From positions 29,636,001 to 29,700,000 of the forward strand of contig NC_043003.1 in assembly GCF_006345805.1 (NCBI RefSeq): a stretch of DNA of 64,000 nucleotides. The letters run 5' to 3'. Within the stretch, counting starts at the first letter, position 1. Each line of letters opens with the position of its first letter. This stretch comes from Octopus sinensis (lineage: Eukaryota). Below are positions 1,808-45,235 of the stretch, in pieces. The translations under genes were made by a program, and so were the position numbers. The notes under the pieces were generated by a model. The model had not been told where the DNA came from, ran no database searches, and saw only the letters and a list, made by a program, of their open reading frames with translations.

Positions 1808-2452
1808 GTATGGATCAAAACAGTCTGATTCAAATTCATTGGTACTCTTGAGTATGAACGAATTTGAATCGTCAGCCATTTTGAATTTGAATGACAGAAG
1901 TTGATTGTTATTACTGTAAGGTGGGCTGTGATTGATCAAGAAAGGTCATGCAGTGTTGTGGTTTGATGTTGATACATGGGTACATGCATGTGAATATAAA
2001 TATGTACATATGAACGAATATGCATGTGTGTGTGTATGCATGTATGAGTGCATGTGTGTATATGCATGTGTATGTTTGTGCATGTGTATGCATGTGTATT
2101 CATTTAATTGTGTGTGTGTGTGTGTGCAGACATGTGCATGCATGCTCATATACAGATGTGCACACTCACATCAATATACACATATAAGCGCATCTACACA
2201 CCCACATATAGAATTATATACTTGCACATGCCGCCCATTCCTACTTCCACCCCCAACAACCTGGCTGATTTTCTGAACACCACGTAGTCTATTTCCTGTT
2301 CACTATATGGTATTTTCCAATTAACTGTTATGCATATACCAACATCAGACCACAACATCATGTGACCTTCTGTGACCAATCACAGCCCACCTTATGGTAA
2401 TAACAATCAACTTCTGTCATTCAAATTCAAAATGGCTGATGACTGTTTTGAT

Positions 2453-2458
<6 letters not shown>
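1808..2458. repeat. Inverted-repeat (foldback/MITE-like) element with CA/TG-rich spacer
   Basis: About 1808-1985 is the reverse complement of about 2325-2458 (gtcagccattttgaatttgaatgacagaagttgattgttatta vs taataacaatcaacttctgtcattcaaattcaaaatggctgatgac). Confidence 0.75.
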
Positions 2459-2502
<44 letters not shown>

Positions 2503-2519
2503 TTATATATAATAATAAT

Positions 2520-3025
2520 ATTAGGGAGTATAACTCCAAACTGACAGGGCAAAATTCAATTTAGTATTAAATCAAATTTCACAATATAAATATATAAAAT
2601 ATAAATTAGAGATAAAGCCACTATTATGCAACTCAAACAGTGATAGACATAAACTAAAACATAAATAACAAATAAAAAATATTTTTATAAAACATATAAC
2701 TAGATCTCAAAAAGTATAAAAATGAATAATCAATATATAATAAGTAAAAAACTACATATGTTTCATGGCTACAATTAAATTCGAATTACAATTAAATTTA
2801 AATTTGATTGAAATAGATTCAATTTAAAATTATAGTCAATCTATTAATAATAATAGTTAAATAAATAAGCAAATAGAGTTAAACAATATTTATTTTAAAA
2901 ATAAATAAAATATTTTTTCTTATAGAAAAAACTCCATTAACTAAAATTGAAACTTAAAACATTAGGATTATTTCCTACAACACATTTATTATGTTAAATA
3001 TTTAATATTTAAGGTAAAAAAAAAA

Positions 3026-3057
<32 letters not shown>

Positions 3058-4020
3058 ATAAATAGATAGAAATATGTATTTATCTGTGAGGATATAATTT
3101 AGCTTAAAAAACATTAATAAACTATCGGATATCTTTAACTCAGTTATACTCCAATATTTAATTACCAAATTATTTAACAAAATAATCACTATTAATATTT
3201 TTAGATTTTAGCATGCATATAATAATTATAGAATAATAAATACATAAAAATAAGTATCTAAATTATAATCAACAAATATAGTAATTAAAAATCTAAAATT
3301 TTTTCTGTCAATAAATGTATAAACATATAACCAAAAATAAATTAGTCCATTATTACTTACATAAATATTATAGATATCTATAGAAAATATTTATGAAATA
3401 CAATTTAAGAATTGAAAAATTCAAATTAAAAATGTATAACCTATCTTTATAAAATACTTATTATTATTATCATCACTATTATCATCACTATTATCAAAAA
3501 CATTTTACGATCTATATCGCAAAGTGACTAACTAATATCTTAAAATTTATGTTCAGATATAATAATTATATACTAATAATAATTAAATAAATGTACATAT
3601 CTAAATTATCATTAACAAATAAAAACATTATAAATTCAAATTTAACAATCAATAGTTATATAGAATACAATAATATTTCTTAAATAAAAAAGTTTACTTA
3701 TCTCTTGAAAAGCATGTCATTTTAATGACACGCTTTTCGAGAGATAAGTAAACTTTCATATATTATATCTTGACATATCATATTATAACATTTTATCGTA
3801 ACATATTTTTTTATTCAGCCATATTCTCTCTTTCTAGTCATGTCATATATATTTTACGATGTCACATCATGTCTGGCTATATCCTACCATATTTTATGAT
3901 CATTCATCATCAAATATGCTTGCTTGTTCTTGTTTGTTTTTAAACATATTTAACCATACCATAATTCTTGTTGTGTTACCTTTAACATTATGTATTTTAA
4001 TGCCATACATAATGTATCAG
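2520..4020 (+). mobile_element. Extremely AT-rich decayed element, probably Penelope-like (GIY-YIG remnant), with a near-perfect 68-nt hairpin at 3689-3756
   Basis: Vestigial motifs in Penelope endonuclease order: KCITYLYK (~3431), IYIAK*..FMFRYNNY (~3510-3575), LNKK (~3680). Flanked by (TA)n and (CAT)n. Confidence 0.4.
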
Positions 4021-4334
4021 CATCATCATCATCATCATCATTGTCTTAATGTCCACCTTTCTATGCTTGAATGGGTCAAATGAAATTCATTGAGGAAGAT
4101 TTTCTATGGTTGGATGCCTTTCCTGTTACCAACCCTAACTTGTTCCCAAGCAACATAATATTTCCTCATGGCAGGACATGTTTTCAGGAATAATTGGAAT
4201 TGACATCACTTGTATGACAGAGACACTCACAAGTATTACATAATGTCAAGACAAGGGGACACAAACACATGCATACATACATACATTCATACTTGCATGC
4301 ATGTATACACACACGCAAGCACACACACACACAC

Positions 4335-4825
4335 ATGCACATGCACGCACACGCATGCACACAAATGTGTGTGACGACCTTCTTTCAGTTTCTGCCTACC
4401 AAATCCAGTACACATCTCATAAGGCTTTGGTTGATTCAGGGCTATAGTAGTGGACTCTCGCCCAAATTGTCATGCAATGGGAATGAACCTGAAACCATGT
4501 GGTTTGGAAGCAAACCTCTTAGTCACTCAGTCATGCCTGTGTCTATAATATCATATATATATATATGCATACACACACACAACACACACATGCACATGCA
4601 CGCACACGCATGCACACAAATGTGTGTGACGACCTTCTTTCAGTTTCTGCCTACCAAATCCAGTACACATCTCATAAGGCTTTGGTTGATTCAGGGCTAT
4701 AGTAGTGGACTCTCGCCCAAATTGTCATGCAATGGGAATGAACCTGAAACCATGTGGTTTGGAAGCAAACCTCTTAGTCACTCAGTCATGCCTGTGTCTA
4801 TAATATCATATATATATATATGCAT

Positions 4826-4835
<10 letters not shown>
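4335..4835. repeat. Perfect tandem duplication, 255-bp unit x2, bounded by CA/TA microsatellites; unit includes a reversed SINE-head fragment
   Basis: atgcacatgcacgcacacgc at 4335 and 4590; the ORF-track translation repeats an identical block with an 85-aa period. Confidence 0.9.
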
Positions 4836-4857
<22 letters not shown>

Positions 4858-6135: not shown

Positions 6136-6476
6136 TTTTTCTAAATTATATATATATATATATATATATATTGCAACATCATACCTTGTTTTGTTGAACC
6201 ATTTCTTATATTTTATGAGTGATGAAATAGCAAAATCAGGAGAGTACTTGATTAAATGCCTTGCAGTATTAAGTTAAAGCTGTTCTGAGTTCAATTCCTG
6301 CCAAAATCAAATTTCTTTCATCATCATCATCATCATCATCGTTTCATGTATTGATTAAATAAATACCAGTCATATATGGATGGAGAGTGTAGATATAATT
6401 GACTGTTCTCATCCTCAAACTTTTCCATGTCATAATGTCAGTTCTCTCTCTGTTTCAGTGATCTCCCTTGTCACAG

Positions 6477-6946
6477 CTGACAAACGATCCTATGATCGGA
6501 ATCCATCGCGGTACAATGAACTAGGAGGACGTGACCGTTCAGATGACAGAAGTCAAATGGGTAACCCACATGATGACAGAGATCGAAGAGGCAATGCACG
6601 AGATGATCGTGGCGATCGTGGTGATCGAGTTGACCGAGACCGAGACCGAGACCGAGACCGTGGGAGCCGTGATGACCGTCATGATCGCATGGATCACAGT
6701 GACACGGATGACCACAACGACCGTGACACTGTCTATAACACCATTGTCAATCCCAATGAGCGTGGCATCAGCCATAGTCCAGATGATGGTCATAACCATG
6801 GATATACTCATAACTCTGACCATGAGGACAACACCCGGGCCAATAAACATGGTAAGGAGAATGGTGGTGCTTCAATTGGATCCCAACTCTCTTGGTTCCA
6901 AAGGATTGTGTTGGCTGGAACATCACTACTGATGGTTGTTATGTAA
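6477..6946 (+). CDS. Terminal coding exon of an unidentified gene: Arg/Asp/His-rich region plus C-terminal GPI-anchor-signal-like hydrophobic tail
   Basis: Pyrimidine-rich acceptors tttcag (6458) and tcacag (6476), both phase 1. Frame is open to TAA at 6944-6946. GC-richer than flanks, with varied synonymous codons. Ends NGGASIGSQLSWFQRIVLAGTSLLMVVM*. Upstream exons not found in the window. Confidence 0.75.
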
Positions 6947-7033
6947 GGGAATGATTTCCACCACCACCATCATCCCCACCACAACATACACATAGTGAAC
7001 AGTAGGGAGTGCATAATATACATATATACATAC

Positions 7034-7087
<54 letters not shown>

Positions 7088-7556
7088 ATACATGTATGTG
7101 TATATATAAGAGACAGGTCCTTTATTGGATCATATGTAACCGGGGAAGCTACCATTTTAAAGTTTCCTCATTAGTGGACTGTTTGTAGGAAATCATAGAT
7201 TTGAGTGTTAGTTTTGTATAGAACATCGTTTCCTCCTGCCCCCTCTTCTCTGATCCTCTGTGCAGGTCACTTTTTCAGATCAACTCAGTGTTTAATACAT
7301 GAGTATTAGTGTGTACAGTAATGTGTTATCGTGTTTAATGTATACCACTGTGTTTTAGCTCATCTATGTTAGGGTATATAATTCTGAATATTATTATGTA
7401 TTAAAGATTTTAATAATTATTGTGTAGCTGTAATCTTACAATGTACTAGTATATAACCTGTACACCAAAGGACTATTAAAGAATCCATCAAATGTAACAG
7501 AATGGCTTTTGTTCTTTTTTGTTCTTCTTTTAATTCTTTCTGTCTTTGTTCCTTGG

Positions 7557-7589
<33 letters not shown>

Positions 7590-7594
7590 CACAG

Positions 7595-7694
7595 AGAAAG
7601 CCTTTAAGTGGCTTTGGATAAAGAAGGCAGACCAATGGTTTGCTGCTACTTGGTTGCAAGCTGGGATTTGATAAAAACTAGCTCGGTCAACTAG
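7595..7694 (+). other. Candidate 100-nt exon
   Basis: About 30-nt poly-T plus cacag acceptor ending 7594; donor ctag|gtaagg at 7695. Phase-1 reading gives KAFKWLWIKKADQWFAATWLQAGI*. Confidence 0.35.
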
Positions 7695-8158: not shown

Positions 8159-10058
8159 GGTTAACCACCAGTTTCTGACCTGGCAAAAAAATGAAAAAAA
8201 ATTGTGTAATAGGTGTAAAACAATATGTAGTAAATGAATATGCAAACGAAGAATGTGCACTGGTGAATAAGGGGGAGACGACTCAGAATGGGAGAGATGA
8301 TTCAGAATGGGAGAGACAACTCAGAGGGATGACTCAGAATGGGAGAGACGACTTGGAATGGGAGAGATGACTCAGAATGGGAGAGACGACTTGGAATGGG
8401 AGAGACGACTCAGAAAGATGATTCAGAATGGGAGAGGCAACTCAGAGAGATGACTCGGAATGGGAGAGATGACTCAGAATGGGAGAGACAACTCAGAATG
8501 GGAGAGATGACTTGGAAAAATCACATCGGGAATGTTCCAAGTCCTCTCACCACTTCTCTGTTTGTCGGTGCTAATTTTTTTCTTCATATTCATTTACTAC
8601 GCATTATTTTATACCTAGTACATTATTTTTTTTCAATTTTTGTGATGGGGGTGGGTGGGATGCAGACTCAGATAATTCACATGATCCAGTAACCCGAATT
8701 TGACACCCAGCCACCAAAAGAAAAAAGAAAAAGTGCAATAGGTGTAAAATAATGTGTACTAAATGATGATGAAAAAAAATGTGCACTGGCAAACAGCGGG
8801 GTAAGGACAAGACTCAGAAAATTCACACAAACTCACAGGATCCAGAAACTCAATGTTAACACCCAGTCACAAAAATGAAAAGCAGTGGAAAGTTTTGTAA
8901 TTAGGGGCAGAGTAGGGGTGAATATTTAAAAGAATTTGCAGTGCGTAAGATGTTTGTAAGCAATTCCAGAACAACAAAAACCATTAGTTTCACTACAACA
9001 TTTAAATTTCATTTGTGTCTAAATATTTTCATTCTTTGAAACCACAACAAAACCCTGACAAAAATTCGTGCTACATCTGTTTTGTCTGTGAACAAGTTGC
9101 GGTTTCAAAGCAACAAAAATATTTAGACACAAATGAGATTTAAAAAGTTGCAGTGAAACTAACGGTTTTTGCTTTTTTTTTGTTTTTCTTTTTTTGTTTT
9201 TTCTTATTCTTCAATGGTTTACAAACATCTATGCTGCAATTGTTTCTGTTAATACCATTATACAGAAGACAGAATTGAAAACATTTTGTGTGCATATTTT
9301 TGTTTTCATCTTTGTTTACAGCATAGATAATTTTTCCTCTGAAATGCCTCCTTTGGCCTCCAGGACACATTGGTCAGCCCGAGGCTATAGTTGAAGATAT
9401 TTGCCCAAGGTGCCATGCAGTGAGACTGAACCCAGAACCATGTGGTTGGGAAGAATATCCATTTTCTTGAGGGAAAAAATCAGATTGTGTGAATTTTCCT
9501 GGTCCTCTCCCCACTCTTGTTCGCCAGCACAGACTTTTTTTCATATTCGTTTACTACATGTTGCTTTACACCTATTACACTATCTTCTTTTCATTTTTGT
9601 GACCGAGTGTTAACTTCGAGTTTTCGGATCCTGTGAGTTTTAACACGTGAATTTTCTGTGAGTCCTGTCCTCACCCCACCCCATTTGCCAGCGCACATGT
9701 TTTTCATAATCGTTTAGTACACATTATTTTACACCTATTGCACTTTTTTTTTTGGTGGGTCATGTGAATTATCTGAATCTGCACCCCACCCACCCTCATC
9801 ACAAAAATTGTACTAGGAATAAAATAATGTGTTGTAAACAAAGATGAAGAAAAAAATTGCACTGACAAACAGGGAAGTGGTGAGAGGACTTGGAACATTC
9901 CCAAAGTGAATTTTCTAAGTCGTCTTTCTCCCCAACCCCATTCGCTAGCGTGCATTTTTTTTTTTTCTTTTTGCATATTCATTTACTCCATGTTGTTTTA
10001 CACCTATTACACTATTTAAAAAAATTTTTTTGCCCGGGTCAGAAATTGGAGATTAACC
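8159..10058. mobile_element. 1.9-kb foldback DNA transposon derivative with long modular inverted arms and 8-bp TSD
   Basis: TSD catcttag at 8151-8158 and 10059-10066. Termini ggttaaccaccagtttctgacc and ggtcagaaattggagattaacc. Left arm ~8159-8880 is inverted relative to ~9480-10058. Confidence 0.8.
8272..8515 (+). repeat. Minisatellite (~19-bp unit gactcagaatgggagagat) inside the foldback left arm
   Basis: About 12 degenerate tandem units; perfect TGACTCA at 8330, 8368 and 8470. Confidence 0.9.
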
Positions 10059-27098: not shown

Positions 27099-30000
27099 TC
27101 CTTTCTACTACAGGCACAAGGCCTGAAATTTGGAGGGAGAGGGCAGTTGATTAGATTGACCTAGTATGCAACTGGTACTTGATTTATCGACACCCCCTTC
27201 CCACCCCCATAAAAGGATGAAAAGCAAAATCAACCTCGGCAGAATTTGAACTCAGAACATAAGACAGACAAAATACTGCTAAGCATTTCGCCCGGAGTGC
27301 TAATGATTCTGCCAACTCACCACATTAGTAATAATAATAATAATAATTCTTTCTAATGTTGGCACAAGGCTAGCAATTTTTAGGGGAAGGGAGTTAGTCA
27401 ATTACATCAATCCCAGTACTTGTCTAGTACTTATTTCATCAACACTGAAAGGATGAAAGAACAAATTGATCTTGTCCGAATTAGAGCTCAAAATGTTGAG
27501 ATTGGGGGAAAATGCTTGTAAGTATTTTTCCCAATGCACTGATTTGGGCTCAAGCCCAGCAATTTTTAGCAAGAGGTGGTTAGTTGAATAAATTGACCCC
27601 AGTACTTGACCAGTATTTTATTTTACTTATCCCAGCATATGAAATGGTGATGTCGGTTAGAACCAGATTTAATTTTATTCAGCATGTAAAGGGACATAAT
27701 TACATGATTTGAAGGAATGATGTAATTTTTGGTCCAAACCCATAACCATACTTAATTTTTCTTTCTGATATTTTTCTCATTTTATTTTTCATATATATAT
27801 TAATCAAAGGACATACTAAGTACGTCTACCTGCTGCAAATAACAATAAAAACTCTTAGATCGCCTAAATACACTGATAATAACTACAGAAATCTATAGTT
27901 GCTATCAGTGTGTTTTGGTAATTTAAATAAGAGTTTTGACTGTTATTTCCAGCAGGTAGACATACTTAGTATGTCTTTTGATTAATTTTAATCCTTCAGC
28001 TATTTAGTGCTTTTTGCGGGATTTCCAATCGCCTGTATTATTGATTCTGTTATTATCGTTTTTTTAAATTGTTACACTAGATAATAACAGGGTCAATGGT
28101 ATCTTCGCAAATTATTTTTTCTCATGAATTATTTGCTCCACATATATATAAAATTCATTTAGTGTTTTGTTTTCTCTTTCTAGCCCCAGTCTGCTGGGCA
28201 GCATTTATGGCAGAACTTGCGTCCGGTGGAACTCCAACCGAACCTCAATGTGTAAAATTAACCGATCCATCTATAAACGGATGTACCCTGTCACACTTGT
28301 CCAGCCTGATGGATCCACCATTGTAATCCGCTACAAAGAGCCTCGACGAATTATCACAGTAAGAATTAATTTCAGTAATTTCATTTTCACATCTAGAATA
28401 ACATGTGTGTGAGTAAAGTTGTCAGGCAAGCTTGAGGATCCAAAATTTCCTAGATTACTATAAAAGACCTCCTTCAGTCATGAATGACCATAAGATTGTT
28501 CCTAGAAAGTTCCCCTCCTACAAGTTTGGGTAAGTTTATTTGTGGAAAACCAGTCGTTGTCCATGCATACCAGCCTCCCCTCTCTGTGCCACCAGTGTTG
28601 TCTAAGGGAAAAGCAAAAGCTGATACAGGCAACTCATTTCTACAGCTACATGAACTGGAATGTCACTGGTGTCAAGCTATATCAGTCTTTGCCATTCCCT
28701 TGGACAACATCGATGGTATCGGATGGTGTGGGTTATGGCCTTGTCACCTGCATCATAAATCAGGTAGTTCATGAAGGAGTCCTACCCAATGCCTGGTGTA
28801 GCAGCACCATAGTCAACTGCTATAAGGGTAAATGTGATGCTTTAGATACAAGTAACTACAGGGGTATCAAATTATTGGATCAGGTGATGAAAGTTACAGG
28901 GAGGCTCATAGCCCAACTAATTAGGGAGAGAGTTAGCCTAGATGAGATGCAGTTTGGTTTTGTGTCAGGCAGAAGCACCACTGATGCTATATTTCTGGTA
29001 AGGCAACTGCAGGAGAAATATCTAGCCAAAGATAAACCTCTGTACTTGGCTTTTGTTTACTTGGAGAAAGCCTTTGACAAGGTCCCCCAATCCCTTATCT
29101 GGTGGTCAATGCAGAAACTGGGGATAGACGAGTGGTTGGTAAGAGCTGTACAAGCCCTGTACAGGGATGCTGTCAGTAAGGTGAGGGTTGGCAATGAGTA
29201 CAGTGAAGAATACCAAGTAGAAGTAGTAGTTTCCCAAGGATCAGTCCTCAGCCCCCTCTTATTCATTATAGTCCTCCAGACAATAACAGAGGAATTCAAG
29301 ACAGGCTGCCCCTGGGAACTTCTTTATGCTGATGACCTTGCTCTAATAGCCAAGTTACTGCCAGACCTAGAGACAAAGTTTAGGGTGTGGGGGCAAGGTA
29401 TAGAATCGAAGGGCCTTAGGGTTAACCTAGCAAAAACCAAAGTCTTAGTTAGTGAGAAAGCTGTCAAATCACAAACCCCTTCAGTTAGATGGCCCTGCTC
29501 GATCTGTAGAAATGGCGAGGGTAGAAACTCCATACGATGTACTTGGTGTAAGCTATGGACACATAAAAGGTGCAACAATATCAAAGGAAGGTTAACCGAA
29601 AAGACAGTTTTTGTGTATGGCAGATGCACAGGGTCAATAAACACTGAAGATTCCATTACATGCCAGGGGGAGAAACTAGAAGTAGTTGATAGCTTCCGCT
29701 ACCTAGGTGACCAAGTCTGTTGTTGGGGTGGTTGCTCTGAGAGTGTAGTGGATAGAATAAGAATAGCCTGGGCAAATTTCAGGGAGCTCCTACCTCTGCT
29801 GGCAACTAAGAGCCTCTCACTCAGGATGAAGTGTAGACTGTATGATGCATGTGTATGAACTGCCATGCTACATGGCAGAGAAAGATAGGCCATGACTGCT
29901 GAGGACATGCATAGGCTTGAAAGAAATGAAGCGAGTATGATCCGCTGGTTGTGTAATGTCACTGCATACACAACAGAGTGTAAGCGCTCTGAGAGAAGAG

Positions 30001-33000
30001 TTGGGCATAAGTAGCATCAAATGTGGTGGACAAGAGAGACGACTGCGCTGATATGGTTCTGGGTGATATTAAGAACTCTTTAGATGTAATCATATACTGT
30101 CATAATGGAGATGTTCAGCAAATAAACTCTGTCCATTGATCATACAATCCACTGCATTATGTTCTGCTGCCACTGAAGGGAACAGGCGGTTGGCAGCTCA
30201 ATATGAAGAAATCAAATGAACAAACATTAACAGCTATGAATTTTTATGCTTACCAACTGCAGGTAAGAACTAATTCAGATAATCATATTATGTGAAATAG
30301 AAGACTTTTACAGTAATATGATGTAGAACAGTGGGTGAAAGTAGTACGGAGCAGGCTAAGGTGCCAGAAAACACTCAGGGTTGCTTGATACTGTCAACCA
30401 AACTAATACAGTAAAACCAGGAAGAAGAATTATTCTCCCACCAACCATCACCTGCAGTCCAAGATTTTACAGTGAGGCCTTCCAAAACACCATGGTAATA
30501 CTGGGAGCAATGGGAAAACCAGATTACTTCATCACATTTACGACAAATCCAAAATGGACAGAGATACAGACCACCTTATTTCCAGGGGAGCATGCACAGG
30601 ACTGACCTGATATTCCTGCCGAGTATTCAAAATCAAGTTCAACACATTTCTCCATGATCTACTGAAAAAACACTTTCTGGAAAAAGTTAATACCTATACA
30701 CTAATGATTGAATGGCAAAAACGTGGCCTTACACATGCACATACATTTATAATGGTTAATTGTCTTAAACCAACTTCCAGAAATCATAGACAAAGTAGTT
30801 AGTGCCAAAATACCCAACAAAGACCGCATCCCAGAGCTATCCAACTCAGTAATGGCACATAATGTTCATGGTCAATGCAGTGCTATCAACCTCCAAAGTC
30901 CATTTATGGAAACCAGGTGAGATGGAGCTCGATGTACTAAGGAGTTTCTGAAACCCTTCGAGTCAGCCACCTATACATCAAGAAATAGCTACTTGACGTA
31001 TCACAGAAGAAGTCTAGCATATAGTGGAAGAACCAATAAAATTTACGTTAAGGGTCAGACAGATTTTGTGGTAAGATTTTTCTTCAACTTATACTGACAA
31101 ATTTTTGATATAGAAAATTTATCATTATGTTTCAAATCTCATAATTTTAAGTCCAATTTTAACAAACCCATATCAACTGGTTCTGGCTTTACACTCAACT
31201 GCATCTACCAAAACAATGTCCATGGAAAAATATAGCAATATATACTATTTACTTACGTTTAATATTTTCTTCGCAGGTTGACAATTCTTGGATAGACCAT
31301 ACAATCTGTATCTGATAATTAAATACTATACCCACATCAGCGTCGAGGTCGTACATACCATCCAAGCAGTAAAGTACTTATACAAATACATTACAAAAGG
31401 GCAAGATCGAATCATCTTAACATCGGAAACAGGACAGCCAATTCCCGTATTAAACGATAAAGAAAACTTGATAAATGCTTCATACATCTCTGCAAGTGAA
31501 GCATTCTGGAAGTTGTATGAATTTTTCATACACCAAAAGCATCATGCAGTTGAAAAGCTACTCTGTCGTTTACCTGATGAACAGACTGTACAATTCGACC
31601 CGACTTCTGTCGCTGTGGTTGTGGAATGTAGACCATCGATAACTAAATTGACAGCTTATTTTCAAACAAACAAACTTGACGAAAAAGCTCGAGAGATTTT
31701 ATACCCAGATTTTCCTAAATATTTCACCTGGAACAATAAAACCAAGTCGTGACAAAAATGAAAACGAGGTACAACCGATGATAATGGTGATGTTAAAACT
31801 GAAACTATCAAACAAATCCCAACCATATCATATAGTGCTCATCAGAGTCAGAACTGTTTCACCTTCAGATACTCCTTCACCATATTAAAGGTGCAACTAG
31901 CTTTGATGAACTGAAGACTGGAGGGAAATGTATGTTCAACATTTCAGCAATCATGCATGAAAACTGGACTGATATTGGACGACCAAGAAATACACTGTGC
32001 AATGGAGGAAGCAGCCAGTGTTTGCTTTGGAGATTCACTGCATGACTTCTTCACTGACATGTTAATTTACTGCCGGCTGCTTGATCTGATGAACTTTTGG
32101 GGAGAGTGTAAAACGAGACCTCATGCAAAGAAACAACATTGGAGGTCTTACCCCTCGCATTGAAAATGAAATATTGATTCGTCTGCAGGAGCAACTTCAA
32201 AGGGATGAACTTGACCTAGTTTGAGATTTCCAGCTTCCTCAACCTGAATATAACGAAACCAGTCAATTGATGCCAAAGATTATTACAGACTGTCTTCGAA
32301 TAGTGTCTACTGACATTTACAATACTCTGACCAGAAGCACGTTTTTGATATGGTTGTAAACTCAGTTTTACAACAGGAAAACAAGGTTTTCACCTTGAGT
32401 GCAAATGGTGGAACTGGCAAAACATATCTTATCAATGCAATCATGGATTTTCTACATTTGGAGAAAAAAATCATACTCACCACAGCTCTATCTGGGATTG
32501 CGGCAACATTGCTGCACAATGGCCGGACATTTTATTCTCAGTTCAAAGTACCCATAAACATAACACCAGGGTTCTGCTGCAATGTGTCATCTCAGGATGC
32601 AACTACACAACTCTTCAGAATGACCTGTCTAATAATAGTTGATGAAGTCAGCCAAGGCAACAAGCTCATACAACTGCTTGGATCATTCCCTATGTGATAT
32701 CAGAGCGAACAAATCCCTGTTTGGAGGAGTATGTGTTATTTTTTTTTAGGTGACTGATAGATTCTACTGGTTATTAAACGTGGTAGTCAAGCTCAAATAG
32801 TGCAAACCACCTTGAAAACATCGTACATCTGGAGGTCTGTGACGGAGTTGAGTCTAAAGAAAAACATGAGGGTACGGAATTCTTCATATACAACTTTCGC
32901 AACTTGTTGGTTACAAGATTGGTTCAAGACAATGCTCGTTCTCTGAGCCACTGAGGAATGTGATTCAAATTAGGCCAGATTTTATACTCAAAATATCATC

Positions 33001-34344
33001 TATTTCTGAATTATGCAAATTCGTCTTTAATGATTTAAGTGAAAACTACAAAAACACATCATGGTTGTGTTCACAAGCTGTCATCGCCTCAACCAATGAA
33101 GTAATAAACAGTGTGAATGAGCACCTGGTTAGCAACTTCTCTGGAGTAAATCAAGAGTACTGTAGTTCAAATACAATAGATGACGGAAACTACCACCAGT
33201 ACCCACAGGATTTCTGAACAACTTAAATCCATTGGAATTGCCATCTATAAAATCAAATTGAAAAAGAACTGTGAAATAATGCTCTTTAGGAATTTCGATC
33301 CAGCCAATGGACACTTCAATGAAACAAGATACATGGTAACTGGACTAAATTCCAGTGTTATCAAAGCAGTGATTGCAACTGGCCCACACAATGGTAAACG
33401 CTTGTTCTTTCAATGGATACTGTTTACACCAACCAATAACCAGTTTCTGTTCCTATTAAGACGCAGGCACTTTCCTATAAAACCGGCATTCTCATTCACA
33501 GCAAACAAGGCACAGTGCCAGACTTTAGATTGTGTTGGTGTATTTTACCCACTCCAATGTTTACACACGTCCAGTTATACCTCACTATGAGTAGAGCAAT
33601 GGACTCGAGTAATTTGAAAATTAGTGTCAACCAAGCAGAAAGTATTCATCTACAAAGAAGTTTTGACTATATTGTATAATTCATAATTTTAATAAGGAAG
33701 TTTGTGAACTTTGAATGTGTAAGAGTATAAACAAGCATAAAATAGTGCAAACAGCTAAAATAAAAGTATATCTAAATAACATTTTTTCTTAATGCTTTTT
33801 CATGCAGTGGTTGAAGGAAGCTCTGATTTTCATTAGGAGTGGTCCACATAACCATTCATGATACAGAGGCTGGGAGCCTATTTCAGTTTGGAAGTGAATC
33901 GTTATCACATGTCACTTAGTTGCAAACACATGTCATATAGCTGCAATAGAATGCTGTATCACCAACAATAATGTGCTTTCTCTAAGACATCACCCAGTAA
34001 TCTATCAAATCCATTTGCACATTTTTCAATTCATCCTGCTGTTATGATTTGCCTCCATCATAGATGGGTAGATTTACTAGTAAAAATAATTAGCAAAGCA
34101 AAAGTTTGGAAAATAAATCATATCTCCATCCCACAGAAATAAAGTTTTCTTCATTTTTATTTTCAAACATTGCTTACCCAATTATCTTTCTTTCTTTCAG
34201 CTTCCTATAGATATTGAAACTCTGACTCCGGAACAGAAGAAATTGCAGCTACAGAAACGAAAACCTAAACGAATCATTCAAGTAGTAGAAGATTTTGAAG
34301 ACGATTTTGATATTGGCCGATACAGGCATCTCTGGAAGAAGTAA
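24759..34344 (+). CDS. MRPL55: Mitochondrial ribosomal protein L55 (mL55/bL31m), spliced gene, 111 aa; exons 24759-24775, 28184-28358, 34201-34344
   Basis: Spliced product MAVFLRPSLLGSIYGRTCVRWNSNRTSMCKINRSIYKRMYPVTLVQPDGSTIVIRYKEPRRIITLPIDIETLTPEQKKLQLQKRKPKRIIQVVEDFEDDFDIGRYRHLWKK. YP..LV..DGSTI.IRY.EPR is the L55 signature. All introns GT-AG, phases 2 and 0 consistent. Confidence 0.93.
26024..26285 (+). mobile_element. Second tRNA-derived SINE family (cttgagcaagacactt core, Meta/V-domain-like)
   Basis: A-box tggctcaatggttagagc, B-box gagtttgattccc, then tgtgttcttgagcaagacactttatttcac. Confidence 0.7.
26290..27680 (-). mobile_element. Cluster of about 5 same-orientation SINE copies separated by (AAT)n tracts in MRPL55 intron 1
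   Basis: Repeated actggtactt...aaaggatgaaa...gaatttgaactcagaac units at ~26300, 26370, 26850, 27100 and 27350. Confidence 0.8.
27799..27986. mobile_element. ~190-bp hairpin MITE about 200 nt upstream of MRPL55 exon 2
   Basis: attaatcaaaggacatactaagtacgtctacctgctgcaaataac pairs with gttatttccagcaggtagacatacttagtatgtcttttgattaat. Confidence 0.8.
28184..28358 (+). CDS. MRPL55: MRPL55 coding exon 2
   Basis: tttctctttctag acceptor; aca|gtaaga donor; encodes YPVTLVQPDGSTIVIRYKEPRR. Confidence 0.95.
28713..30060 (+). mobile_element. RTE LINE reverse transcriptase fragment (5'- and 3'-truncated)
   Basis: ORF 28542-29858 contains QFGFVSGRSTTDAIF, LEKAFD, QGSVLSPLLF and LYADDL. Premature stop at 29856 is a CGA>TGA change (intact gtgcga in the copy at ~58605). 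Confidence 0.95.
30062..33668 (+). mobile_element. Helitron Rep/PIF1-helicase pseudogene in MRPL55 intron 2, with an internal GT-AG intron (31071-31276)
   Basis: GKPDYFITFTTNPKWTEI (Rep motif 1), EWQKRGLTHAH (HUH), KYLYKYITKG (motif 3), GGTGKT (Walker A), IIVDE (Walker B), FPIKPAFSFTANKAQCQTL and terminal YKEVL; many frameshifts and stops. Confidence 0.93.
34201..34344 (+). CDS. MRPL55: MRPL55 coding exon 3
   Basis: tctttctttctttcag acceptor; LPIDIETLTPEQ...YRHLWKK*; ATTAAA ~40 nt downstream. Confidence 0.93.
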   Translation, partial: LPIDIETLTPEQKKLQLQKRKPKRIIQVVEDFEDDFDIGRYRHLWKK

Positions 34345-39459: not shown

Positions 39460-41378
39460 AGTTGATCAAACTGAACATCCACCACATCAATCCCAGAAGC
39501 CATGAGTACTGTTCCTACTTTCTGACTGAACTTATTAACCTTTCGTCAATCTCCAGTTTCTGCATCGCCCACCAGATAAGGGAACGGGGGACCCCGTCAA
39601 AGGCTTTCTCCAAGTCTACAAAAGTTAAGTATAGGGGTTTGTCTTTAGCTAGGTATTTCTCCTGCAGTTGTCAAACCAGGAATATGGCATCAGTGGTGCT
39701 TCTACCCGGTACAAAACCGAACTGCATCTCATCTAAACTGACTCTCTCCCTAATGTAATGGGCTATAACCCTCTCCATGACCTTCATCACCTGTTCCAGC
39801 AGTTTGATACCACTGTAGTTATTTCTGTCTAGAGCATCACCTTTACCCTTGTAGCAGTTGACTTTGTTGCTGCTATGCCAGTCATTGGGTATGACTCCAT
39901 CATGAACTACCGGGTTTACAATGCATGTGACTAGGCCATAGCCTATACCACCAGATGCTTTAAGCATCTCAGCAGCAATTTGTGATGGGCCTGGGGCTTT
40001 TCTTGGCTTCATACCCTTAATTGCTTTATCTACTAGGGAGCTCTCTATTTGGATAGCTGGTCCCTCTACTCCTCCCATTCATTCTCCACATTCAGCAGCC
40101 TTTCATAATGGCTTCTCCAAGCCTCTTTCTTTGCAGAATCATTAAAAGCAAGTGCACCATCATCCATGCGGATGCATTTCTCTCCTGTGACATCACAATT
40201 TTCTCTCACACACTGTCATGCAATCCGAAATACTTCAGTTCTTTGGTCCTCACGTCACTGGACATTGGCAAACTTCTTCTTTTCTGCTTCACCCTTGGCT
40301 ATGTCTACCTGCAGCCCAGCATCCCTTTTGGCTACCTGGTAAAGTTTCCTGCTTCCCCCAGCTTTCCAGGCCTGTTTCTTTGCTCTAATGGCTTTGTCTA
40401 CTATACTATTCCACCACCATATAACTCTAGGTCTGGAATGGACTTCGCATCATCCACAGATTTTGTCTGTAGCACTCAGCAAGCTGTCCCATAGGAATTT
40501 CCAGCTACCTTCTATGTCTGCTACGTCTGATATCTGTAGCTCCTCCTCCCTCTCATCAAATTTCTTGATGAGGATGTCCCTAAATCTCTGACCACATGAA
40601 GGGTTCTTTAGCTTCCAAATCCTTTTTTGGATTGGTCTGCTTCTTGGTATCCTTCTGACCTGAAGCCTAAGGTCACTAATGACTAGCCTATGCTGGGAGG
40701 ATACATTCTTCATCCAAGAGGGTCTTTGTATTTAAGAGCAACCCTGCATACCGCTGTCTGGTGAGGATGAAATCAATCTGGCTAGCAGAGTCACCTGATT
40801 GATAGGTTATCAGGTGGCTGTCTGATTTCCTGAAGTTAGTGTTGCAGATTAAAAGGTTACATGCATCACAAAACTCCAGTAGCATAGTTCCCTCATCGTT
40901 TTGGGAACCAATACTATGTACACCAGTGAAGATACCGGATTGCTGCCCAACATGTACACCAGTGAAGATACCGGATTGCTGCCCAACATGCCCATTAAAA
41001 TCTCCAGCCGCAAAGATGAGGTCATTGCCACTCATCTTTGAGGTAGTCTGTAGAAGAGTATCATAAAAATGATCCTTCTGATCATTTGGTAGGCCCGTTT
41101 GTGGGGCATAGGCAGAGATAATTGTAGCTGTGCTGTTCTGCAGGACTAGCCTGAGCTGAAGCACTCTATTGCATACCCTGACAACCTCTAGGATTTTATG
41201 TACCCATTTCTCTGCAAGGAGTATGCCTACACCCCCCACTCCATCCATGTTACCTTGCCAGAAGATTTTATACTTATGTGCCTTGCCTGTGAGGACTCTA
41301 GACGAAGCTCCTCTCCATCTTACCTCTTGTATGCAGCAGCATACATCGACACATCTCCTTTCAAGCATCTCTACAATC

Positions 41379-45028: not shown

Positions 45029-45235
45029 ATGGCAGATACAACATCTGAAACAGCGTCAGTCCTTAATGCAACAAGTGCGGACAATGCAGCCACATCTGGT
45101 GCTACTAATGCCACCATGCGTGTACCTGCAACACCTGAGGGAATGGTGGTGGCTTACAGTAGTCTAGTTATCATGGCATTACTACCAATCTTTATCGGTT
45201 CCTTTCGCTCTGTGAAGCACCATAAGGAACAGAAG
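45029..45235 (+). CDS. HM13: HM13 exon 1
   Basis: MADTT...PATPEGMVVAYSSLVIMALLPIFIGSFRSVKHHKEQK|gtacgt; two NAT sequons. Confidence 0.95.

Follow-up and report, generated by a model that had tools for sequence, protein, structure and literature searches.

A small two-exon gene of Octopus sinensis, whose last exon lies at 6459–6946 (+) of the 64,000-nucleotide stretch analysed here (the window), encodes a short protein with a predicted signal peptide, a mature region without a predicted fold and a C-terminus of the GPI-attachment type. The reading that we favour, with moderate confidence, is that the product is a GPI-anchored, fully disordered surface polyampholyte, which acts through its composition and belongs to a gene confined to Octopus. 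The gene is already held in RefSeq and UniProt, where it is uncharacterised and, judged by its sequence, misnamed.

Gene structure and coding status

The peptide strings quoted in the original prediction (the RD run, RGDRGD, the His/Asp segment, NGGASIGSQ and the terminal IVLAGTSLLMVVM) all lie in the + frame that ends with the TAA at 6944–6946. This frame belongs to exon 2, the last of the two exons of O. sinensis XP_029638843.1 (183 aa), whose residues 22–183 are identical to the translation of the exon in the window; the window itself is base-identical to the O. sinensis chromosome CM016865.1 over the 16,946 nt compared. The 3′ end of intron 1 (6440–6458, +) consists of a polypyrimidine tract and the acceptor AG (6457–6458), and is identical in O. 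vulgaris and O. bimaculoides. The acceptor is strong (...tctctctctgtttcag followed by TG across the junction) and sets the exon start at 6459, from which the coding part of exon 2, residues 22–183, runs to the stop at 6944–6946 (+). The intron is in phase 1, the last base of exon 1, an A, joining the TG at 6459 to form the codon of Met22. Exon 1, composed of MMVYRCQQLSLFFLLVVLTSN plus this A and followed by the donor GTGAGT, is located 10,703 nt upstream of window position 1 in O. sinensis, which gives intron 1 a length of 17,161 nt; a tblastn search of the window with the 22-residue N-terminus returned no credible match. It encodes the core of a classical signal peptide (n- and h-regions), and exon 2 opens with the c-region. 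Genes of secreted proteins commonly have this layout, with a separate first exon for the signal peptide and a phase-1 intron after it.

The same two-exon model was annotated independently in O. vulgaris and O. bimaculoides. All three models use the acceptor equivalent to 6459, and the three orthologues, of 178–183 aa, start with MMVYRCQQLSLFFLLVVLTSNM. The exon had been proposed to begin at 6477; an acceptor there would have the same phase as the one at 6459. It figures in none of the three gene models, on whose evidence the start is moved to 6459. Nor is the exon an orphan tail, as it had been called, the gene being already annotated in RefSeq (under a wrong name) and its exon 1 having been found upstream. 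The reading frame stays open 5′ of the acceptor as far as an in-frame ATG at 6380, inside the intron (6380–6458), and a transcript that retained the intron or was initiated internally would give a version of the protein without signal peptide. A probable 3′ UTR follows at 6947–7500 (+), with ATTAAA signals at 7400 and 7475, from which a putative poly(A) site is placed. Its identity to O. bimaculoides is 95–98% over 7100–7499 and 86% over 7500–7599, the value for the CDS being 89.8%.

In DNA so repetitive and so rich in GC (0.49 in the CDS versus 0.34–0.37 in the flanks), the open frame alone is weak evidence of coding, and it is not unusual for such sequence. The next + frame has just two stops, one minus-strand frame is open for 110 codons, and in a simulation 48 random substitutions left the frame open 24% of the time. 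The assignment as a coding last exon, which agrees with what had been suggested, rests instead on the in-frame splicing to a conserved signal-peptide exon, on indels that keep the frame (12 nt and 3 nt), on near-invariant ends and on the three concordant gene models.

Several other elements are found in the window. Within intron 1, a 255-nt unit is duplicated in tandem at 4320–4853 with 98% identity between the copies; it coincides with the only other 485-nt bin of high mismatch between O. sinensis and O. vulgaris (15 mismatches), which probably comes from a paralogous alignment. The same intron is extremely AT-rich at 2400–3900 (GC 0.15–0.23) and carries an (AT)27 microsatellite at 2457–2511. 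About 1.3 kb 3′ of the stop there is a degenerate tandem array (8271–8517) with a period of 19 nt and higher-order periods of 51 and 121 nt; read in one frame, it gives GRDDSEWERQLR-like repeats interrupted by stops, and its alignment between species is poor. A non-LTR retrotransposon remnant at 28542–29858 (+) has an ORF with a reverse transcriptase (RVT_1, 1.3e-26) and a PHD-like finger, and a second non-LTR copy at 39671–41368 (-) combines a reverse transcriptase fragment with an endonuclease/exonuclease/phosphatase domain. A broken PIF1-like helicase extends over several ORFs at 31288–33590 (+) (PIF1 7e-26; Pif1_2B 2e-5) and is probably a decayed Helitron-type element. The ORF at 45029–45235 (+), which starts MADTTSETASVLNATS...PEGMVVAYSSLVIMALLPIFIGSFRSVKHHKEQK, presumably resembles the first exon of a signal peptide peptidase (HM13/SPP); this short piece had no match in Pfam or among PDB sequences. 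Rfam and tRNA scans of the window for RNA genes were empty.

Predicted targeting signals and disordered mature region

The full-length orthologues start with MMVYRCQQLSLFFLLVVLTSNMISLVTA, that is, with a basic n-region (R5) followed by a hydrophobic core, L9–L18. This h-region, LSLFFLLVVL, comprises 10 residues with a mean hydropathy of 3.16 (peak at residues 10–18). The c-region M-I-S-L-V-T-A (6459–6478, +) fits the (-3,-1) rule by inspection, with V at -3 and A at -1, so that cleavage is predicted by this rule after A28, leaving D29 as the next residue. An N-terminal ER signal peptide, as GPI proteins require, is thus indicated by sequence rules in the full protein, encoded for the most part by the exon outside the window. 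AlphaFold2 predicts only two helices, at residues 2–34 and 167–182.

At the other end, N156 to the C-terminus (6860–6943, +) has the characteristics of a GPI-attachment signal. According to the PredGPI and NetGPI papers, such a signal is made up of a polar flexible linker, small residues from omega-1 to omega+2 (omega being C, D, G, N or S, and omega+2 being G, A or S), a spacer from omega+3 to about omega+9, and a hydrophobic tail that begins at about omega+10 and reaches the last residue. The octopus C-terminus follows this layout region by region, as had been suggested. The polar linker D-N-T-R-A-N-K-H-G-K-E precedes N156-G-G-A-S160, in which the candidate omega sites N156, G157, G158 and S160 all satisfy the published rule; the spacer is contained in A159–R170, and the protein ends with the hydrophobic run I171–M183 (6905–6943), with nothing after it. 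The omega region, spacer and tail are therefore all of the kind expected in a putative GPI signal. The mean Kyte-Doolittle hydropathy of I171–M183 is ~2.5 (summed by hand), the last 9-residue windows score 1.9–2.0, and the tail is identical across the three species. What counts against the GPI model is that the purely hydrophobic run is short, 13 residues being at the low end of the range, and is preceded by Q-R. Judged from its sequence, such a run is also too short for a conventional transmembrane anchor. GPI tethering is well supported by these rules, from which we infer GPI addition and display at the surface.

Between the two signals, D29–N156 (~128 residues; 6479–6862, +) forms the mature disordered polyampholyte, as defined by composition and AlphaFold2. 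It is built almost entirely of R, D, H, N, G and S (30 D, 24 R, 13 N, 11 G and 10 H), and contains neither Cys nor any N-glycosylation sequon (N-x-S/T). The fraction of charged residues (FCR) is 0.48, NCPR is -0.055 and kappa is 0.08. With an FCR above 0.35, a near-zero net charge and no predicted fold, the region is a strong polyampholyte by the criteria of Das and Pappu. The pLDDT of the AlphaFold2 model is below 50 over nearly all of residues 31–140, in agreement with the disordered middle that had been proposed. The pI of the mature chain is 5.8–6.0, its net charge being about -7 at pH 7.4 and about 0 at pH 6. The composition is steady in the three species, with R at 24/25/22, D at 30/29/28, H at 10/10/11, FCR at 0.47 and kappa at 0.08. 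A low kappa reportedly goes with an expanded coil and not with a collapsed or condensing chain (Das and Pappu, 2013), and the suggestion of a condensate-forming role is disfavoured because the charges are well mixed.

The RD core is encoded by tandem DNA repeats. A perfect hexanucleotide repeat, (GACCGA)x4.8 at 6632–6660 (+), gives the DRDRDRDRDR run, and a 9-nt repeat of GATCGTGGC (2.6 copies; 6605–6627, +) gives DRGDRGD, with the RGD motifs at 6608–6616 and 6617–6625. In composition-matched shuffles at least two RGD motifs arose by chance with P=0.08 for the mature region and P=0.13 for the RD core. The tandem RGD is thus not clearly beyond chance, and is most likely a by-product of the 9-nt repeat. 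RGDRGD is conserved in O. vulgaris and O. bimaculoides, which, as close relatives of O. sinensis, provide little statistical power; the proposed significance of the motif is weakened by the chance level for this composition and by the repeat origin.

The His/Asp/Asn-rich half comprises H96–D145 (6680–6829, +). The C-terminal cluster H133, H135, H139 and H143, together with H127, is conserved while the neighbouring residues vary, a pattern that is not statistically significant at such divergence; elsewhere, R and H swap between species by CGT↔CAT changes. CGN accounts for 21 of the 25 Arg codons. Because R↔H (CGT↔CAT) and R↔Q are the commonest interspecies changes, the “His-rich” character may in part be a decayed RD repeat.

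A furin-type motif (R-x-[K/R]-R), R-D-R-R at R62–R65 (6578–6589, +), is conserved in the three species. Besides it, the protein has a single KR pair, absent in O. vulgaris, and no Gly-dibasic amidation site. A neuropeptide precursor was considered and set aside, the amidation sites being absent and the one RDRR being the only conserved site.

Taxonomic range and sequence evolution

The gene was searched for among annotated proteins by a word-indexed search of 5.8 billion clusters (E≤0.01) and by an exhaustive HMMER profile scan of 1.84 billion representatives (E≤0.001). The word-indexed search matched two clusters only, one with O. vulgaris CAI9725478.1 (at 93% identity), which also contains O. 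sinensis XP_029638843.1, and one with O. bimaculoides XP_014786561.1 (at 72%). Neither search returned a homologue outside Octopus, the HMMER scan recovering the query's own cluster alone, and no paralogue was found among the annotated proteins searched. As far as annotated proteins indicate, the gene appears to be restricted to Octopus. It had been described as possibly cephalopod-specific, which agrees with the lack of any detected relative outside the genus but overstates the evidence, as it was seen in just three Octopus species. Pfam gave no domain in the three orthologues (E≤10) apart from a sub-threshold PFF1_TM, at 15 bits versus a cut-off of 32, and a search of PDB sequences gave no relative. 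In the literature, no mention was found of six accessions of the gene and its orthologues, of a link between octopus and ribonucleoprotein 70 kDa, or of anything relevant on GPI-anchored His/Asp-rich disordered proteins.

RefSeq names the gene “U1 small nuclear ribonucleoprotein 70 kDa”. This identity was rejected, since Pfam detects neither an RRM nor U1snRNP70_N in the three orthologues (E≤10); no U1-70K protein was returned at E≤0.01 in the cluster search or at E≤0.001 by HMMER.

The ends and the middle of the protein differ in their evolution. Between O. sinensis and O. bimaculoides, the signal-peptide exon and the last 22 codons together differ at 3 of 130 nt, where the rate of the whole CDS would predict 13.3 differences (P=5e-4) and that of the flanks 7.4 (P=0.057, marginal). 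Over exon 2, dN/dS is 0.92–1.06 in all three species pairs, a range in which no purifying selection is seen on the residues of the mature sequence and which counts against the explanation that we favour. Between O. sinensis and O. vulgaris there are 14 substitutions in 485 nt of CDS versus 106 in 16,161 nt of surrounding non-coding sequence (OR 4.5, P=1e-5). This excess holds at non-CpG sites (OR 4.7, P=8e-4), and is weaker against O. bimaculoides (OR 1.6, P=0.026). Of these 14 changes, 11 are non-synonymous and 3 synonymous; the synonymous ones are raised too (0.7 expected; dS 0.028 versus 0.0066 in the flanks), so that a local mutational hot spot is a possible alternative cause of the fast divergence.

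Six of the 14 changes are packed in 21 nt, in codons 6–12 of exon 2 (6476–6496), right after the predicted cleavage site. Where they can be polarised by the outgroup, they fall on both lineages, and O. bimaculoides has its 12-nt deletion at the same spot.

The CpG observed/expected ratio is 0.85 in the CDS, 0.10–0.18 in the flanks and 0.33 window-wide. CpG sites have changed in 12 of 56 cases in the CDS versus 16 of 34 in the flanks (P=0.018), the CGN Arg codons decaying more slowly. The idea that hypermutable CpGs alone drive the fast divergence of the CDS was rejected on two grounds, the excess that stays at non-CpG sites and the better preservation of the CpGs in the CDS.

We read this pattern as selection that keeps the targeting signals, Arg content, length and composition and leaves the residues free to change, those of the N-terminal tip being possibly driven to do so. 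The three species are close relatives, and their conserved composition, RGD and His positions carry little statistical power.

Proposed mode of action, alternatives and significance

In the mechanism that we favour, the precursor would enter the ER by means of its cleavable signal peptide, and the GPI transamidase would remove the last ~23–27 residues and add the anchor. The remaining chain of ~15 kDa would stand on the outer leaflet as an expanded, strongly hydrated and slightly acidic tether. Its activity would come from composition and not from exact sequence, through the alternating charges and the conserved His/Asp cluster, which could coordinate divalent cations or switch the net charge near pH 6. 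An activity of this type would explain why signals and composition are kept while single residues are replaced as fast as, or faster than, expected under neutrality. The gene structure, the signal-peptide and GPI-type features, the predicted disorder, the taxonomic restriction and the evolutionary pattern were computed here, and from them we infer the steps beyond, namely GPI addition, surface display and a function dependent on metal or pH.

The same divergence data bear on two other readings, in which the middle of the protein is either left to drift or driven to change. A young, lineage-restricted gene, either born de novo or too far diverged to be recognised, may yield a transcript and even a protein, with a mature peptide that is essentially unselected, a middle that is a decaying microsatellite and histidines that are mostly CpG-decay products of Arg codons (CGT→CAT). 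The dN/dS of ~1, the lack of homologues outside Octopus among the 1.84 billion representatives and of paralogues, the perfect tandem repeats (GACCGA)n and (GATCGTGGC)n behind the core, the dominance of R↔H and R↔Q among the interspecies differences, and the survival of the ORF in 24% of trials with 48 random substitutions are all consistent with it. Such a gene is nevertheless unlikely, if the first to be considered among the alternatives, given that signal-peptide exon, splice sites, tail and 3′ UTR have clearly changed less than the middle, the CpG-containing Arg codons outlast the CpGs of the flanks (o/e 0.85 versus 0.1–0.18), length and composition are constant, and substitutions are above the neutral flank rate and not equal to it. 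That last excess (OR 4.5, P=1e-5; OR 4.7, P=8e-4 at non-CpG sites), the 11:3 ratio of non-synonymous to synonymous changes, and the six changes immediately after the cleavage site, on both lineages where they can be polarised, would fit instead a molecule for recognition at the cell surface (with gametes, self/non-self or pathogens) that diversifying selection has shaped, of which the membrane-distal N-terminal tip would interact and the RGD pair, present in all three species, may bind integrin. With a dN/dS of only ~1, a dS (0.028 versus 0.0066) that would also fit a mutational hot spot, and an RGD that lies within chance for the composition and derives from a DNA repeat, we consider this quite improbable, and below the non-GPI topologies discussed next.

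Those topologies concern the hydrophobic ends, and include L165–M183 as a transmembrane anchor without cytoplasmic tail, a hairpin held by both ends, or a chain that is plainly secreted. They draw on the two terminal hydrophobic helices predicted by AlphaFold2 and on the 19 residues that L165–M183 would offer if Q169 and R170 were tolerated. The unbroken hydrophobic run of 13 residues, however, lies at the very end of the protein and has no flanking basic residues, the small-residue cluster N-G-G-A-S is found 10–15 residues upstream as in GPI signals, and the V-x-A after a 10-residue h-region favours cleavage of the signal peptide; we therefore regard them as improbable, and as somewhat less so than diversifying recognition. 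A nuclear role, as U1 snRNP 70 kDa or another RD-repeat protein, has in its favour only the RefSeq names and the RD-rich composition, and such membership is refuted by the lack of RRM, of U1snRNP70_N and of significant U1-70K similarity in a protein of just 183 aa that is hydrophobic at both ends, in its signal peptide and at its C-terminus. The boldest reading would make the protein an undescribed type of metazoan surface molecule, a GPI-tethered, fold-less Arg/Asp/His polyampholyte whose tip diversifies between sibling Octopus species and which serves recognition or metal- or pH-switched adhesion, for example at gamete, sucker or epithelial surfaces; this we hold to be quite improbable.

Among known systems, the tails of U1-70K (SNRNP70) and NELF-E have alternating Arg-Asp runs like those of the octopus protein, which is the source of its RefSeq name. 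Both are nuclear RNA-binding proteins with an RRM, whereas the octopus protein has no RRM and carries secretory and GPI-type signals, so that the likeness is compositional only. The procyclins (EP/GPEET), CD24 and CD52 are small proteins in which a short, disordered repeat of dipeptides or of low complexity lies between a signal peptide and a GPI signal, and whose function resides in their composition. The octopus protein shares this architecture and has no sequence relationship to them. Procyclins are acidic Glu-Pro rods, glycosylated or phosphorylated; unlike these trypanosome proteins, the octopus one, which is metazoan, balances R with D in a His-containing polyampholyte and lacks any N-glycosylation sequon. 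In GPIHBP1 (acidic tail) and the prion protein (His repeats), a disordered N-terminal region of a GPI protein captures a partner electrostatically or binds Cu/Zn, but a folded domain stands between that region and the anchor; the octopus protein has none and is not homologous to either. The omega region of CD59, with Asn, Gly-Gly, a small residue, a spacer and a hydrophobic end, resembles the K-E-N-G-G-A-S of the octopus protein and offers a lead; CD59, however, has a folded Ly6/uPAR domain with disulfides, and the octopus mature part has no Cys. Reflectins and the His-rich, metal-binding disordered proteins (e.g., histidine-rich glycoprotein) are comparable in disorder and in richness in His, Asp, Arg and Asn, and the net charge of the octopus protein lies near the switch point of His titration (pI 5.8–6.0). 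Reflectins are cytoplasmic, rich in Met and Tyr and built on conserved motifs, and no similarity to the octopus protein was detected. By analogy with these systems, an extracellular RD/HD polyampholyte on a GPI-type signal would be an unusual variant of the small GPI-anchored low-complexity coat proteins.

Lineage-restricted small secreted disordered proteins are numerous in molluscs, and the finding has no bearing on a long-standing open question. It corrects a misleading RefSeq name that had spread to two species. If the prediction holds, RD repeats, normally a mark of nuclear RNA processing, can sit outside the cell on a lipid anchor. The gene provides a clean, small, genus-restricted case in which signals and composition are under constraint and single residues can change freely or are driven to do so, and would be useful for studying the origin of low-complexity surface proteins by microsatellite expansion and their evolution between sibling octopus species.
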